A stretch of DNA of 64,000 nt from Asterias rubens (Eukaryota). A program made the translations under genes and the position numbers. The stretch covers positions 7,316,001 to 7,380,000 of the forward strand of contig NC_047073.1 in the NCBI RefSeq assembly GCF_902459465.1. The letters are read 5' to 3'. Below the pieces are notes generated by a model, which did not search any database, was not told the origin of the DNA, and was given only the letters and a program-made list of their open reading frames with translations. Shown here piece by piece: positions 1,422 to 56,990 of this stretch (position 1 is the stretch's first letter; each line of letters starts with the position of its first letter).

Positions 1422-2577
1422 TTAAAAAAACCTTCACCGTCTATCCAAGCAGCAGTTATAAATTATGATGTAACTAATTAGAAACAGGTGAGCAGAAAGT
1501 AAAATGGCTAGAGGCCTCATTGCATTAGGAAGTTTGTCCCAAAAGAGTGCTCTCACTGAACTCAATGAAGAGCTATCATTGGCTGTCGAGAGTTGCGCCT
1601 GGCGCGTACACGCGTGTACGGACGGTTTCATGTTTTATGCAAGGGGTCTGTTTTCTGTGGGATCTAAAGGTTAAATGGTTTTGACATGGGACTTAGAAAA
1701 TGTAGGTGTCAGTAGAGTTACCAGGTGATTTTCCATTGATTACAGCCCTGAACATGCACAGTCATTACCGAGGACAATGGATTTACCTAGTAAGTCTGCT
1801 GCCACCAAGCGTCCCATAAGTTCCCCATTGTATGACGGTCCGGGTAGGTCAATTTAGGGTGGGTTGATGTGTGTGTGTGTGTGTGTGTGGGGGGGGGGGG
1901 CTAGATTGACGAGGTTTGGGGGTTCCAACCACATCCACATCAACTGGTGTTAGTTCCGTTTTCGGAGCTAAAAGGAGAAGTTTTTTTACCACAAAATTGT
2001 TTTTTCCTGCTACTATCCACCAATCGTTCCCTTTGCAACGGCTTATTTTCCCTCAAAAGCAATTCTCATTTTTATACACTTAAAGTTTGTCAGGTGCGGG
2101 AGCTCTGTGGTTTAAGCGGGAAGTTTAAGGATTAATCTGCTTTTCTTTCAGTCTCTAAAAGCTCAGCTCTCATTTGAACCCCACCTTCACCCCACCCACC
2201 CCTTGTCAACAACAAGTAAATATAGCATTAGGGTAACCTATGCAGTTCTTACAACAGAGTTCGCCGTCTCAGATATGGATACGTTAGCAATCATTAACTT
2301 AAAATCTAATATATTTTTATTGAGAAGTTGCAATAATATTACATAAAATAGGACTCCGTGAAAGAAGTAATGTCTTATGTGTGAATAATTCTTTACAGGT
2401 TAGCATTCAATTGTTCGCAAAATCTTCATGCTATGTATAGCCCTTCGGGTTGCAGAATAATTTTGTATAAATCTAGAGTGTGGAAACGGTAATGGTTTTC
2501 GACACGTTCTTATGCCCTGTCTAAGGACTATAGAATACACTCTAAGTACAATACCCAAGGAATGTATCTGCCTTTAA

Positions 2578-2960
2578 GACACTGGACACTATTGGTAATT
2601 GTCAAAGACTAGCCTTCACATGTTGGTGTATCTCAACATTATGCATAAAATAAAAAACCTGTGAAAAATTGAGCTCAATTGGTCGTCGAAGTTGCGAGAT
2701 AATAATGAAAGAAAACAACACCCTTGTCACATGAAGTTATGTGCGTTTAGATGGTTGATTTCGAGACCTCAAATTCTAAATTTGAGGTCTCGAAATCAAA
2801 TTCAGCGAAAATTACCTGTCTCGAAAACTATGTCACTCAAGAGGGAGCCGTTTCTCACAATGTTTTATACCATCAACCTCTCCCCATTACTCGTTACCAA
2901 GTAAGGTTTTATGCTAATAATTATTTTAATTTAGTAATTACCAATAGTGTCCACCGCCTA
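2578..2960 (+). mobile_element. Kolobok-type MITE family A, long-hairpin subtype
   Basis: Ends GACACTGGACACTATTGGTAATT / AATTACCAATAGTGTCCA; TTAA at 2574; internal GATTTCGAGACCTC..GAGGTCTCGAAATC hairpin; many homologues in the window. Confidence 0.85.
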
Positions 2961-4183
2961 AGTTGTCATTTGTACCATTCAAGAGGCATTTTTTCTATTA
3001 TAGAATTGCCACCCTTAAAGGAGTTCCTGGTTTCCTTTTAAGGATTCCCTTTTGAATCGATTTAGAAGGGGAAAAATGTCCCCATTGAAAACACCACGAC
3101 AGTGGCAGTTTTGATGTAAAGAACAAAAAAATTGCATCCAGGAGCGGGGCCTATGCTTAAAGGATATTTTACTGGATGAGAACTAAAGTTTGACACTGTC
3201 TGCAGGAGAAAGAAAGGCTAAATTGATGCAGGAAGCGCCAGTCGCGCCGATTACTCAACCAGCCCAGACCGCGTGATCGTCTACAGATCCCAGGCCAATT
3301 TTGGCCCCCTTTTCCCCCCAGCTTGGATAAAATGGTTCTGGGGGATCAGTAACAAGGAGACTGCTATTGCTTTAAATTCGACAGGGAATTGGATGTGTTT
3401 GGATGGGATCTAGGCGGATAAGGTTCAATATTGACTGAAAATTAAACACCGATTTGATATGATGACACATGTTAACGATCTTGTGGCAGGTACGGTCTCG
3501 AGTCGGTGGGCGACATGAAGGTTTTTTTTTCTTTACAAGATTTTGAAGGTCTGCGGGCATGCAACCGTGTTTCGCATAAAGGAAAACTCAGGTTTATATT
3601 CTATTCAACGATTGTATCAAAAATGTTCTTAATAAAGGTTATGCAAGGCAATAGTATTAAAAAAAACAAAATAATAATAATAACTGTTCATTCATTATTT
3701 GTTTTCTTTCTTTTTTGAACCCGCAGTTTTTGTTTACATTCTTTCCCAGTCAGTTTCCCTTGTGGTCTATTCCCTTTGTGTTCGCAATGTTCTGTTCTAT
3801 TCATCAATGGTATATTATAAAATTTGGAAGCATGATAATACCCAATACATTATGCACTCGTGTTCCAACTTTCTCTGCAAAAGGTAAACATTTTCCTTTT
3901 ACAACCAGCAGTGAGGTTGATCTACGACCGACTGCATCTCTAAATGATCAATTACACAAAGCAATTCTTCGGTGATACTTTATCACAGTTGATCTTATTC
4001 ACCTGCGCTAAGTGCGATAAGATAGACAAGGTATGATTCATAAAAGATTGAAGATAATGAAGTACACGGGCAGTGGCGTCCCCAGATAGCATCGGATAGG
4101 ACAAGTCTACCCCACACTGATCAATAAAAAGCCTTCAAATTTGAAACCATACTCTACTAAAAGTCTGCCTGTGGATGATTTAA

Positions 4184-9047: not shown

Positions 9048-9575
9048 AGGCACTGGACACTATTGGTAAATAGTTAAAGTAAAAACATACTTGGTAATGA
9101 GCAATGGAGAGCTGTTGATAGTGTAAAACAGTGTGAGAAACGGCTCCTCTGAAGGTTAATCGTAGTTTGCAAGAAAGAGGTAATTTCTCACTCAAATAAT
9201 ACAAGACTTCAGGCCTAAAGCCTTTTAATAGGCTTCTGAAAACACTTAAGTGCAACAATGAATTTTGTCTTGCATTCTTCTCTTGCAACTTCGATGACCA
9301 ATTGAGTCAAAATGTTCACAGAATTGTTGTGGTATGCATACTATGTTGGGATGCACAAAGAGAGAATACTGGTCTTGGACATTTATCAAAGGTGTCCAGC
9401 CGTCGATTTCACCAAACTCTTCCTAACTTAGGATTAATCTCAGGACTTAGGATGAGTTGAGTCCCGCATCCAAATACGTAGGAAGCATTGAACCCATCCT
9501 AAGTTAGGACGGGTTACTCGTCCTAACTCGAGTTAGGATTAATCCTAGAGTTTCGTGAAATCGGCTGCAGTGCCT
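9048..9575 (-). mobile_element. Kolobok-type MITE family A carrying a nested MITE in its right TIR
   Basis: TTAA at 9044 and 9576; right TIR GGTGTCCAG|TGCCT split by the insertion. Confidence 0.8.
9400..9567. mobile_element. Harbinger-like MITE (CCGTCGATTTCAC family), CWG TSD
   Basis: TIR CCGTCGATTTCACCAAACTC / GAGTTTCGTGAAATCGGCTG; CAG at 9397 and 9568. Confidence 0.8.
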
Positions 9576-41731: not shown

Positions 41732-43984
41732 CGAAGTATGCTGTGACAAAACGGAACATGGTATCATTCATTGTGAGTTTGAGCCCGTGTGTATTGTGTG
41801 CCTCTGTTTGGCCGAGGATATTCGAAGTGCTTCCAAAAGGTCAGGATTCACCCACTATCGGTGCTGAAGAAGGAAATTAAGTTTGTTAAAAGTGTTAGTT
41901 ATCAAAAGTCAGTTTCGTTGTAATCTTAGGCAGTGATCGGTGTGCGTGCCAATGCGGTTTGTGTTTCCATCTTCTAACGTTCACTGGTCAGTGTAGTATG
42001 CCACATTGTTGACCCCCATCTCTTCTGTAGCTGTGAAATTTTGAAGTAAAAACTATCTTACGGACACTATAGTTTGAGTCATTGACAGCTAGAACAAATT
42101 ATGGATGATTTTTAATATAGGTTTTCCCGGTCAATTTAAGGGGACAAAATCATTCAATTTTACACCTGGTTCATTTTAGTTTCGTTTGGGGCTGGTCAAC
42201 CATACATTGTATCCGTTGTATGTGAAGAAATTAGTTTTCTGAAATGTGCTCTTAATTTTTAAAATGAATATGAATACTTTGTGACTATTAAGACAAAATA
42301 AATTTCCCCTATAATGTTTGTCAGTTATTTTCTTGAGTATAGGCACAAAGAAGAAGACAGTACAGTAAAATCGATCCCAGCTACTCGAGATACACGTTGA
42401 GTCTCTACAGAACATACAAATAATACATTAGTATCGAGTAAGCCGAATACATTTTGATTATGAGTGACAGTTTCTAAAAACAGATACCCAAAATGGAGAG
42501 GAAAGAAGGAGTAAGGGCGGGGGTGAGGTCGAGAGAATTTCTCAAAGATCGTGTCGCGTTTCCCAAGACGGGTGTGGAAAACAAGTCCACGCTTTGTCGA
42601 CAAAGGTCCAGGTGGAATTCCTGTCATAATTTGCTGCAAATCAAAAAAAATGAAGGGGGAAGCAGGAGAATCTGTCAAGGTGATATTTGAAAGTCCGGTT
42701 CACACTGTCTTGGATATGAGTGTAATTGAGGAGGGTTGCAAACAAGCGCTTACTTTGTCAGGATATGTCTCCTTTTTCTAAAGGGGGAGTAAAGGGGAGA
42801 AAGGAGATTTGGCAGACGTTGATGGGGCACGCTAGAACGGTTCCAGTTGCCAGGTCTCGCACGGTGCCTTCATCGGGTTGCATTCAACTGCGTCCAGGGG
42901 TGATTCCCGACCCGTTATAAAAACCCGTCGTGCTGAAAACAGGTGTGCCATTCTTCACAAACAGGACACACCTGGGGGTTGTGTTTGACGCTATCTGGGC
43001 CTGCCAGCCGCTACACCGGGCGTCCGTAGCGTGCCGAGAGCTGTTCAACCAGGTGGTTTGCAGGGCCGTCGTCTGGAGAAGGACACACGACGCCCCAAAT
43101 TCTGTCTATGGTGGAAACGGTGCTGACAGGTTCGCAATTGCAGCGGGGACTTAAACGGTTCCCTTTAGAGAGGAGGGGGATAAATACAGACATTTTCGGG
43201 TTCAGTGAAAACCAGGAGTTTATTCTATCAAAGCTCCTTTTGGAAAGATGTCCTGCCAGAACTTTTAGAATCAATCAGTGAGCAATTACGAGCAAGAACG
43301 CTTGTTGTAGTTGACTTCAAACAACCATTTTTTCAGCCAAGCACAGGGCCGTTGAGATGGGACGTCTCACCCAAGGGGTTCAAATGTCTCAGGTACTTTT
43401 TCAAAATCGATCTCTGATGATGGAAGTTTCAGTCAAGGGGGTTAGGGCAACATGCTGAGAAACGAAGGAAAAAAGAAGTGAATCTAAAAGATGTAATAAT
43501 ATTTCTTATATATTTTCTTGGAATAAAACATTATATCAGCCAGCTCGTCGAAATTACTTTAAAGTTTCTTCTCTCATGTCTACACAAAAGGTTCTTATTT
43601 CCTGAACATTTCTCTTCACCAACGAATAATGTAATAATTCTGAGAGGCAGATGCCCTTCATTTCCTCCACACCAAACTTTTTCATCTTTCAAATTAGCCC
43701 TGTCAATTAGTTACACCTGCGAAAATATGACATCCTGGGATGTTTCCCCAAATTGAATTACAAAGAAGGGAGCTGGGACATCCATGTTCTCCCATGCGGG
43801 GGTAGAAGTATGTCAGTGACCCGTAGGGCTAGAGGGGAGGGGGACGAGACAGGCAACCAAAATAGGGGTGGATCAAAAAGTGCCAAAGGCAGTCTTGAGT
43901 CCTTTTCACACTGCTTTATTTCCCGGGGTTGCCCCCATGTGAACAAAGACCGGGCTTTGCACACTGTGATATCGCTTTCGGGAA

Positions 43985-52029: not shown

Positions 52030-53339
52030 TTAAAAGGTTCAACAAATAAATAGGAAGAATTTAATTTACAAACTGCGGGCGCTCTCATTCTTCATACACG
52101 TATACTACTATAGCTTTCTAAAGTTCAAACTGCTCATGTGCCAATGTAATATAAAATTTACATCGTAGTGTTGAGCGTAGTTAATACGCTCAACACTACG
52201 ATGTTCGCTCTGGCATATAAATGGTACAGTTATAACATCAATACTCCAATTTACATTGGGCAGATAGCCAAAGCATACACACGGTGCATTACATTGCCTA
52301 CCGCCACCCGTTGAGATAAACTCCTCTGTCATGTGATGTTTACAAATATTAAATAGTAACCAACGACCATCACATGAACACATGGTGATAAAGTGAAATC
52401 TTATTTTAGTTTTTGCTCATTTTGTTTTTACTTACTGCATTTAAAACGTTTATTTAATGAAGGACCTGTGTTTTGTTTTTAGTTTGAATATATTTTATTG
52501 ATTTCATTACTCAGAATCTGGGTTTAGCAAATCGATGGGAGTTAGTTTTAACATGTGTGGATTTGTTTACTTGTTTGGTTGTTTGTTTCTGTTTATAATC
52601 AGTGTTGTCGTGCTAAAACATTTCAAGACCAGAACACAGGCTATATTTGGATATGTTATCAACCATTTCTAATTTTGTTTTACCATGATTTGTTATCAAA
52701 ATTATGGGGTGGATGTTGTATGATATAAATAAAAAGAAAATGAACCAGACTTTTTAATTATTTACAGACTAAAGAAAATATTGTATGATAGAGCAACACA
52801 CACATCGAGTCGGTTTGAGTAATGCTGAATGAAATTAGAAAATATTAGACTATTAATTGAGTTTAGTTCAGTTTTATCTTTCGGTGTGATAAACATTGTT
52901 CAAACTCATTTCGTGTGTTTTTATTTTGCAAAACGGAAGACAAAGTCACCATTCAGACCAACATGGGATTTGAAAAAAGACAACAATTACGGCAAAGGGG
53001 AAATGTGTCTCACTGATACTGTGAAAACATTTGCCGTTGACAGAAATTGGATTTATCTTTTCGGAATTTTGTACTGAATAAAATGGAAGAAGATCCAGAA
53101 AAAAATGAAAATATTTAATGAAAATAAAGAATAAAGTCCAAATGTGTCACCGACAACTCTTTTTGTGTATTAAAATATGAATTATCTCTTGCTGGTATCC
53201 GGAAACGTTTTGGCTCAAACAATTACAAGGATTAGTTTTTCTGAGACGGTTTTTCCGGGTAAAAAATTACTTGTCAAACGACGCATCAGCCCTGACACAA
53301 GTCCTGACACAATACACATGAGCGAGAGCGCACTATACA

Positions 53340-54022
53340 GCGATGTGCACGGCCCGCAATCTACACAACCAACTACGGATTGAGTCACATTGCCAAGCGC
53401 TCTTATATACCTCTCTAAAAATAGCATTCGGCTCTCCTCACCAAAACAAACCCGGACTGCAATGTGTACACACGGAAAATTTCACACGGCTAAGGCCAAG
53501 CCACACTACAGTGTTTAGCATGACATAGCATATCAGAGGTATCCCCCCTACATGAGGCTGTTAGCACGTCCGGGATTCGCCGAGTGACTTCTTTACGTCA
53601 CAGCCTGTCGATGACGTCAGATTACCACTCTGCGCTGTGATTGCATTAGAGCCTATTGTTGGACAGAGCCGCTCATGTTTTATTCATGAGCCACCGACAT
53701 CTCCATAGTCACGACGAGAGCTCCGTTCACTGCGAGTGCTCGACTACACTGAGCCGTCTAGCCGACGAGCGAGCTCTGGTTATATACGGTCTAATTTTAG
53801 ATATGCTAATGAGTCAGCGCTGAGGGCTCTGATTGGCTGTGAGCAGCTGGCATGAATGAAACAACCGGAGGAGGGTATGTGATTATATTCCAACCACCGG
53901 CGGGAGATTCCTCAGAACTCACTTGAGAGTCGTGTTTAGAAGATCATAAGAGAAAAACTATATCTGCTGTGACTGAGAATTTCTTTTTGCGAGAGAATAC
54001 GGAACAATAACTGGATAAAACA
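53340..54022 (+). promoter_or_regulatory. CpG-rich proximal promoter and 5' UTR of Klf2/4
   Basis: MEF2 sites CTAAAAATAG 53415-53424 and CTAATTTTAG 53791-53800; AP-1 TGAGTCA 53381 and 53810; CRE TGACGTCA 53612 and TTACGTCA 53593; ATGCTAAT 53803; reverse CCAAT 53832; CpG density well above the flanks. Confidence 0.7.
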
Positions 54023-54079
54023 ATGGCACAAGCACTCGGCGATATGACACAACACAGCCTTTCCAACATGTCAAATGAT
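54023..54079 (+). CDS. Klf2/4: Klf2/4-like gene, coding exon 1 (MAQALGDMTQHSLSNMSND, 19 aa)
   Basis: ATG at 54023 (context ACAATGG), 19 open codons, then donor GTAAGT at 54080; phase 0 joins in frame to exon 2. Confidence 0.75.
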
Positions 54080-55906
<1,827 letters not shown>

Positions 55907-56990
55907 ACTATATCACCATGAACATTGACATTTTTTAAAGCTAAAAATGTACATGCAAAATCTTTGATTCAATATCCCATTGGATATCAGTCATATTATT
56001 TGCTATTTGTATATTTTTTGGGTAAGTTCTCGGGGGTCGATTCTTTGATTTGTATTGATATCATCGAATTGGCTAAAACCTGATGAGCTACCGACGAAAC
56101 CCAACACAGGACGCCACGATCTGGCCCTTGGTTTGTTGGTGCAGTAAGATGGACAGGTCTCTCAATAGCCAAAAAAGGAAGAACAAAATATTCTTAAACT
56201 TCCAAATTCGATTCTGATTCGATTCTGGTTCGATTTTTGAGCGAACAACTCGAGAGATCTGGACATGGGGGTGCATGCGAGATGGGTAAACATAACATCA
56301 GAAGTGGAAATTAAAAGCTAAAACACAAATCTATTTTTTAAGTATGATATCCTTTTAAGGAACAAAAATCAAACAACGCTTGCTGAAATGGAATAGTTCA
56401 ACGTCTTAAAAACACGTTTTTTCTCAAAAGCATGTTATGTTTACTTCTGAAGTTTTGAGTTGTGTTCACTAGGAGAAATACTCTTTTATGACTTGTCTTT
56501 TTTGATATAAAGACCAGAGCTGTTTCAACAAGTGAGCACAGTACTGTGTTTTTTGAAATAAAAAAAACATTTAAATATAAAACAAAAATTGCCAAGTTGT
56601 TTACACAGCTACCGCGACGCGATAGATTCGTTGAATTTTAAAGTGCAATTGTAGTACTAGAATTTTGACTGTAAAAAAAAGGTGTACATTAGAAAACGTA
56701 TAAAGAACATCATTTTATATGGGGTGTAGAGTGCATGCCAGTTTATTTCCTTATTATTTTTTAATCAGCAGGTCTGTTCTATTATTATTAATATTATTAC
56801 AATTAAAATTGAACTAATTAACTATTATCAACTGGTAATGATTTACAATATTCTTTGCCTTTGTACCTTTGTATTAATTGTATAATTATGTACTCTAATT
56901 GATTATTGGTGATGAGATATTAATTTGGAATTAATATCATCTGTGAGAGGAGGAATTTACAGCAACTGAATAAAATGACCACAGGCTGGT
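55907..56990 (+). other. Probable Klf2/4 3' UTR with two candidate poly(A) signals
   Basis: AU-rich sequence after the stop; AATAAA at 56557-56562 and 56969-56974; true end not determinable. Confidence 0.45.

Follow-up and report, generated by a model that had tools for sequence, protein, structure and literature searches.

The window, which is the whole 64-kb stretch of Asterias rubens DNA that was analysed, carries a two-exon gene of the Klf2/4 type on its forward strand, and two composite modules stand upstream of it. The transcribed part of the locus consists of the following features, with the exon structure taken from RNA-seq:

53914-53929, + strand, transcription start region; assembled transcripts start at 53922 (X1) and 53929 (X7)
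53922-54079, + strand, exon 1 of Klf2/4; coding from the ATG at 54023, 19 codons
54080-54868, + strand, intron of Klf2/4; splice 54079/54869, GT..AG
54869-55906, + strand, coding part of exon 2; 345 codons with three C2H2 fingers, stop codon at 55904-55906

The open reading frame at 54869-55906 shows 100% identity to P0001, a protein of 364 aa named 'Krueppel-like factor 4 [Asterias rubens]', and the nearest relatives of P0001, which come from other echinoderms and hemichordates, are named KLF2, KLF4 or KLF2-like. In addition, Asterias Klf2/4 aligns with lizard KLF2 over the zinc fingers and over the LLTPPS motif that precedes them. These protein matches identify the gene downstream of the modules as a Klf2/4 orthologue, and the match to P0001 bears out a first-pass annotation of this DNA, in which a KLF of the Klf2/4 type had been named as the target gene.

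Four RNA runs, which cover few tissues, place all transcript 5' ends within 53922-53933, in RNA-seq contigs as well as in raw reads. In these same runs, the read depth over 53000-53887 is 0, and no transcripts starting at either of the two TATA-like boxes of the modules are detectable. Since the transcript 5' ends lie at 53922-53929 and upstream depth is zero, GATTATATTCC at 53881-53891 is assigned as the core TATA. Compared with the window, the RNA runs labelled organism B carry a synonymous T>C at 54079, the last base of exon 1, and lack 3 nt at 55994; one contig also lacks 11 nt at 56206, within the 3' UTR. The differences resemble allelic or population variants.

Upstream of the transcription start region, the following elements were found:

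53381-53387, + strand, AP-1 site TGAGTCA, 14 nt 5' of CTTATATACC and 16 nt before the TATATA core
53402-53411, + strand, TATA-like half of the distal double motif, CTTATATACC (TBP-type), read from the sequence
53412-53414, + strand, spacer TCT between CTTATATACC and the MEF2 site
53415-53424, + strand, consensus MEF2 site CTAAAAATAG, which fits YTA(W)4TAR
53430-53453, + strand, block GGCTCTCCTCACCAAAACAAACC of 24 nt directly 3' of the distal module; asteroid-invariant (alignment A1) and also present in L013
53470-53489, + strand, ETS-like CGGAAA in the conserved block ACACGGAAAATTTCACACGG; ACGGAAAATTTCACACGG at 53472-53489 is ETS/NFAT-like and invariant in three asteroids
53594-53601, + strand, TTACGTCA, between the modules together with TGACGTCA; conserved core in three asteroids
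53612-53619, + strand, CRE palindrome TGACGTCA, between the modules; conserved core in three asteroids
53780-53800, + strand, proximal copy of the double motif, TTATATA-CGGT-CTAATTTTAG, spanning about -140 to -120 relative to the TSS; found in 11/11 species compared
53803-53816, + strand, octamer-like ATGCTAAT overlapping a second TGAGTCA; the octamer ATGCAAAT is also present in Acanthaster and Diadema
53832-53836, + strand, inverted CCAAT box ATTGG within GATTGGCTG, 12-33 nt 3' of the proximal MEF2 site across species
53881-53891, + strand, core-promoter TATA box GATTATATTCC, invariant in three asteroids and about 30-35 bp 5' of the transcript ends

The three motifs of the distal module that the first-pass annotation had listed (TGAGTCA, CTTATATACC and CTAAAAATAG) have exactly the coordinates given there, all on the + strand. 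With the start set at about 53920, the distal module spans about -518 to -496, and its AP-1 site is at about -539/-540. The composite is rare, as TTATATAC-N4-CTAWWWWTAG has a single match in the 64 kb and none in 100 dinucleotide-preserving shuffles. By themselves, CTAWWWWTAG and TTATATAC occur four and seven times in the window, respectively, and two of each are found at the Klf2/4 promoter, 377 bp apart, because a second, proximal module is present at 53780-53800. Beyond these two modules, no further double-motif copies are found in the 53 kb upstream of Klf2/4. A recent local duplication of the modules was considered and rejected: a repeat search did not group the two copies as a family, since they differ in the spacer and in the MEF2 core. 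TGAGTCA by itself is not enriched in the window (12 copies against 8.6 expected); despite this, the AP-1 copy at 53381 is conserved between species. The second TGAGTCA, in the proximal region (within 53803-53816), is Asterias-specific. Three more blocks between the two modules, TTAGCACGTCCGGGATTCG (53561-53579), a Sox-like CCTATTGTTG (53652-53661) and CATGTTTTATTCATGA (53674-53689), do not vary across three asteroids.

The Asterias locus was compared with its orthologues in ten further species (Acanthaster, Patiria, Amphiura, Diadema, Antedon, Ptychodera, Saccoglossus, Lingula, Owenia and Mytilus), which gives a sample of 11 species from five phyla. In 11/11 species, the gene strand carries the strict pattern TATATA-N3-7-YTAWWWWTAR at -630 to -190 relative to the ATG. 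Elsewhere in these loci, the pattern occurs once per 558,820 strand-bp, corresponding to 0.0012 expected per promoter. Both copies fit the strict pattern in Acanthaster, Patiria, Antedon, Ptychodera and Saccoglossus, the proximal copy does so in Amphiura, Diadema, Lingula and Owenia, and the distal copy in Mytilus. When one mismatch in the MEF2 site is allowed, Amphiura, Diadema and Lingula gain a distal copy and Mytilus a proximal one. Counting strict and one-mismatch copies, the distal module is present in the same orientation in three more asteroids, an ophiuroid, an echinoid, a crinoid, two hemichordates, a brachiopod and a mussel, and the proximal module in all 11 species, the annelid included. 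All 21 modules of the 11 species point the same way as the gene and have 4-6 nt between TTATATA and the MEF2 site.

The sites around the modules are shared to varying extents. TGASTCA stands 13-23 nt 5' of the distal TATATA in 8/8 ambulacrarians (Asterias, Acanthaster, Patiria, Amphiura, Diadema, Antedon, Ptychodera and Saccoglossus) and likewise in L013, an asteroid contig from a metagenome. The module, with or without the AP-1 site, is also found in a brachiopod and a mussel. CGGAA(A/G) lies 3' of the distal module in the asteroids, Antedon and Ptychodera, and every ambulacrarian, as well as Mytilus, has ATTGG 12-33 nt downstream of the proximal MEF2 site. Among three asteroids, the entire 900-bp promoter can be aligned (alignment A1), with 81% identity over a core of 730 bp, and no other alignable sequence is found among them within 10 kb upstream. 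Outside the asteroids, the flanks of the modules are unalignable, so the module is conserved deeper than its surroundings; in the 10-taxon alignment A2 of the distal region, TTATATA.C and A....TAG are the only invariant positions. Conservation in other echinoderms had been proposed as a check on the first reading, and the module and its AP-1 site are indeed kept in other echinoderm classes and in hemichordates.

Amphiura, Diadema and Lingula share a distal variant, TATATACCCG(T)CCAAAAATAG, which is located at 9336-9356 of the brittle star locus (L003), at 9441-9460 of the sea urchin locus (L004) and at 9393-9413 of the brachiopod locus (L009). The CCAAAAATAG variant departs from YTA at a core position, with C for T as the second base of the MEF2 site. 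It is a CArG/MEF2-like hybrid, atypical for MEF2, and represents either the ancestral state or else a tolerated, recurrent change. The Klf locus of Diadema antillarum is present on two contigs (L004 and L005) with the same protein and the same module positions, and these are probably haplotigs of the assembly. Farther upstream in Asterias, about 11 kb 5' of Klf2/4, a 100-bp block at 42938-43038 has 83% identity, in inverted orientation, to Acanthaster L001 1450-1547, which lies about 8.5 kb 5' of the Acanthaster Klf. A 35-bp piece of this block matches the extreme edge of the Patiria locus. The block has no Rfam match and no clear ORF and could be a distal enhancer or a repeat fragment.

In a reverse test, the exact pattern TTATATACC-N2-4-CTAAAAATAG was scanned against public metagenome contigs, resulting in 73 loci in 44 sequence groups. 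Most of these groups appear to be chance matches in AT-rich DNA of bacterial or organellar origin, and 8/44 resemble eukaryotic promoters with a CCAAT box. Within these eight, a KLF gene is verified in two only. One is L013, a further asteroid Klf promoter in which the AP-1 site and the second module are also present; the other is L073 (8393-8414 / 2283-3364), where the double motif and a CCAAT box are followed about 5 kb downstream, on the same strand, by KLF zinc-finger exons, and this distance therefore points to a long first intron in this invertebrate contig. The six further groups, which include termite-gut and GC-rich contigs, have a CCAAT box 16-35 nt 3' of the motif, on contigs too short to show a KLF gene. 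L012 (3728-3748) and nine near-identical termite-gut contigs contain TTATATACCAGCTAAAAATAG, followed by TGATGTCA, ATTGG, TTACGTAA and ATTGG; no KLF coding sequence is found on these short contigs. Their sequence resembles an insect-host Klf promoter of the proximal type and, if confirmed, would extend the double motif to the Ecdysozoa. L023, L055 and L048 (GC about 0.7) contain CCTTATATACCCTGCTAAAAATAGCC; CCAATCAG follows 16 nt later and a second CCAAT stands farther away. This suggests the promoter-like architecture of a GC-rich eukaryote whose gene lies off the contig.

An element of this composition is known from vertebrates, where it has been named the "MEF2-TBP double motif" of KLF2/4/6/7 regulatory elements; it combines a MEF2 site with the former 'A/T-rich motif A', now renamed, and corresponds to the shear-stress/ERK5 response element of human and mouse KLF2 (Fleisinger et al., bioRxiv 10.64898/2026.02.04.703710). 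It is located in the KLF2 promoter, in two KLF2 enhancers, in one KLF4 enhancer and in the KLF6 and KLF7 promoters, where it binds MEF2 and TBP with both halves required and with a conserved spacer of 3 bp (2-4 bp accepted), and flow raises the TBP occupancy at the motif (bioRxiv 10.64898/2026.02.04.703710). It is described as an extremely rare code that explains the selective induction of KLF genes by blood flow, its conservation is shown from human to zebrafish only, and invertebrates are unmentioned (bioRxiv 10.64898/2026.02.04.703710). The mouse KLF2 MEF2 site, ctaAATTtag, and its importance have been confirmed independently (PMC4108324).

The mammalian sequence had been given in the first-pass annotation as CTTATATACCGCGGCTAAATTTAG, and it stands exactly so in the human KLF2pr-0.4 fragment (bioRxiv 10.64898/2026.02.04.703710 supplement). 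In gene orientation, this fragment reads GGCTTATATACCGCGGCTAAATTTAGG, with a core TATAAGG about 80 nt later, and the human copy lies 110-134 bp 5' of the KLF2 TSS with the core TATA separate (bioRxiv 10.64898/2026.02.04.703710 and its supplement). A literature search for the exact mammalian string returned only its MEF2 half, in PMC4108324; the full string is in the preprint supplement. The consensus strings and alignments of the supplement were machine-read with OCR errors and were kept out of exact matching. Earlier work reportedly proposed other binders, namely PCAF, hnRNP-D and nucleolin.

The element at the Asterias Klf2/4 promoter is real, non-random and under strong purifying selection. 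The distal module, consisting of the AP-1 site, CTTATATACC, the 3-nt spacer and CTAAAAATAG, is with a probability of about 0.75 one of two composite upstream control elements of Klf2/4 that are of the same kind as the vertebrate double motif, and enhancer-type rather than core promoter. It combines the sequence and position features of that motif, i.e. a MEF2 site, a TATA-like box, a spacer, a place in a KLF regulatory element, a non-core position and deeper conservation than its surroundings, and is best read as an ancient signal-responsive upstream element. By analogy with vertebrates, MEF2 would bind the CTAAAAATAG site and a partner would occupy the adjacent TATA-like box in a fixed helical register; this partner may be TBP, for which the basis is one unreviewed preprint. 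The AP-1, ETS-like and CRE sites could add MAP-kinase and cAMP inputs, leading to a rapid, signal-driven induction of Klf2/4, with the module acting as an upstream enhancer element rather than as a core promoter.

TTATATA is also a canonical TATA sequence, and the TATA-like box could accordingly be the true core TATA of an alternative, tissue- or stage-specific upstream start, with the MEF2 site between box and initiator; the asteroid-invariant 24-nt block at 53430-53453 could then begin an upstream exon or an enhancer RNA. This is quite improbable. No start is found 25-35 bp downstream of 53404 in the four runs with their limited tissues, so the CTTATATACC box does not behave as a core-promoter TATA; the depth over 53000-53887 is zero in these runs, and all 5' ends fall within 53922-53933, behind a separate, conserved core TATA at 53881-53891. 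In addition, the constant 4-6 nt gap to the MEF2 site is foreign to core promoters, and the equivalent vertebrate box fails to bring in the other components of the pre-initiation complex (bioRxiv 10.64898/2026.02.04.703710). A chance juxtaposition of AT-rich words without function carries a negligible probability: the individual motifs are short and TGAGTCA shows no enrichment, but the composite is absent from all 100 shuffles and is kept in 11 species from five phyla, while the flanks are unalignable outside the asteroids. The rarity of the strict pattern, the one-mismatch copies and the A2 alignment effectively refute this reading.

Somewhat less improbable, although still unlikely, is that the element is real but is bound by other factors, such as two MADS-type dimers (SRF/MEF2) or a homeodomain, HMG or ARID protein on the AT-rich box, or that its likeness to the vertebrate element is convergent. 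The proximal variants of the TATATAGG type are, by our reading, one mismatch from the SRF CArG box, and the CCAAAAATAG variants of three taxa are atypical for MEF2; also, the chordate gap is unbridged and the binding of TBP comes from a single preprint. Against this, CTTATATACC departs from the CArG consensus CC(A/T)6GG at three positions (2, 9 and 10), and the AT-rich box of the KLF2-41 enhancer was not bound by MEF2A or MEF2D in EMSA (bioRxiv 10.64898/2026.02.04.703710). Convergence is unlikely because the 10-mer, the order, the orientation and the spacing are the same and the distance of the proximal copy from the TSS is nearly that of human. The reading as an upstream control element of the double-motif kind is preferred.

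The double motif is kept at Klf2/4 promoters across echinoderms, hemichordates and lophotrochozoans, together with its orientation and 4-6 nt spacing. The first-pass annotation had placed the MEF2-to-KLF2/4 wiring before the origin of endothelium, and at the level of sequence this is well supported by the match to the human promoter, the conservation across phyla and the identity of the gene as Klf2/4. As the motif is present in all echinoderms and acorn worms of the sample and in its brachiopod, annelid and mussel, the switch would predate blood vessels; the same code, in duplicated form, at the Klf2/4 genes of animals without endothelium suggests that MEF2-to-KLF wiring is older than vessels. 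Cephalochordates, tunicates, ecdysozoans and cnidarians lie outside the sample, and for this reason common descent with the vertebrate element is inferred rather than traced. A further-reaching proposal, to which we lean only slightly, is that the double motif is a pan-bilaterian, KLF-specific code, of which two copies (a distal one at about -500 and a proximal one at about -130 with a CCAAT box) were present at Klf2/4 in the protostome-deuterostome ancestor and were inherited, with orientation and 4-6 nt spacing, down to human KLF2. If this is true, the endothelial flow-responsive MEF2-to-KLF2 axis would have been co-opted from a far older circuit responsive to stress or mechanical cues, and the motif would be among the very few promoter grammars that can be traced by sequence across Bilateria. 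A grammar of factor sites conserved in sequence among protostomes, ambulacrarians and mammals is rare. The constrained features are now identified as the TTATATA core, the 4-6 nt spacing and the orientation, and sea star and sea urchin embryos, which are injectable, are open for probing the TATA-like half and the ancestral signal.

A literature search that left out most subscription journals found no report of a double motif at invertebrate KLF genes, and nothing useful was found on Klf2/4 in echinoderms. An association of MEF2 with a TATA sequence and TBP under the control of signalling has been described in Drosophila, where the core promoters of antimicrobial-peptide genes contain a single overlapping MEF2-TATA site, CTATAWAAGM, at about -30 (Clark et al. 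2013, PMC3807682). This compound element is part of the core promoter and its sites overlap, whereas the sea star has two separate sites, 5 nt apart, at about -500; a core element of the Drosophila type was thus rejected, as the sites are non-overlapping and are not located at about -30.

The vertebrate KLF2-41, KLF2-66 and KLF4-148 enhancers and the KLF6 and KLF7 promoters resemble the sea star locus in having several double-motif copies per KLF locus with ETS sites nearby. The KLF6 and KLF7 promoter copies lie 322-412 bp 5' of the TSS, comparable to the sea star distal copy (bioRxiv 10.64898/2026.02.04.703710). The vertebrate KLF enhancers are tens of kilobases away, whereas both sea star copies are within 550 bp of the TSS.

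The closest counterpart is the human KLF2 promoter. It shares with the Asterias distal copy the TATA-like 10-mer CTTATATACC, identical at 10/10 positions, and behind it a consensus MEF2 site, with the order and the orientation towards the gene unchanged; CTTATATACC adjoining the MEF2 site in a vertebrate promoter had been named beforehand as a check, and human KLF2 has it. In both cases, the element stands at a KLF2/4-type gene with its own core TATA and is more conserved than its flanks. The two differ in the distance from TTATATA to the MEF2 10-mer, which is 6 nt in human, 5 in the sea star distal copy and 4 in the proximal copy. Counted as in the preprint, where the human 6 nt correspond to a spacer of 3, the distal copy has a spacer of 2, within the 2-4 range, and the proximal copy falls just outside this range because its spacer is 2 nt shorter than that of human (spacer 1). 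They also differ in the MEF2 core, which is AATTT in human and AAAAAT in the sea star distal copy, and in the AP-1 site, which accompanies the ambulacrarian distal copies and is not seen in the human 0.4-kb KLF2 promoter. In position, the human element at -134 to -110 nearly coincides with the sea star proximal copy at -140 to -120, and the distal copy lies at -518 to -496. The sea star modules are an invertebrate, duplicated form of a known vertebrate element, and the phylogenetic depth is the notable result.
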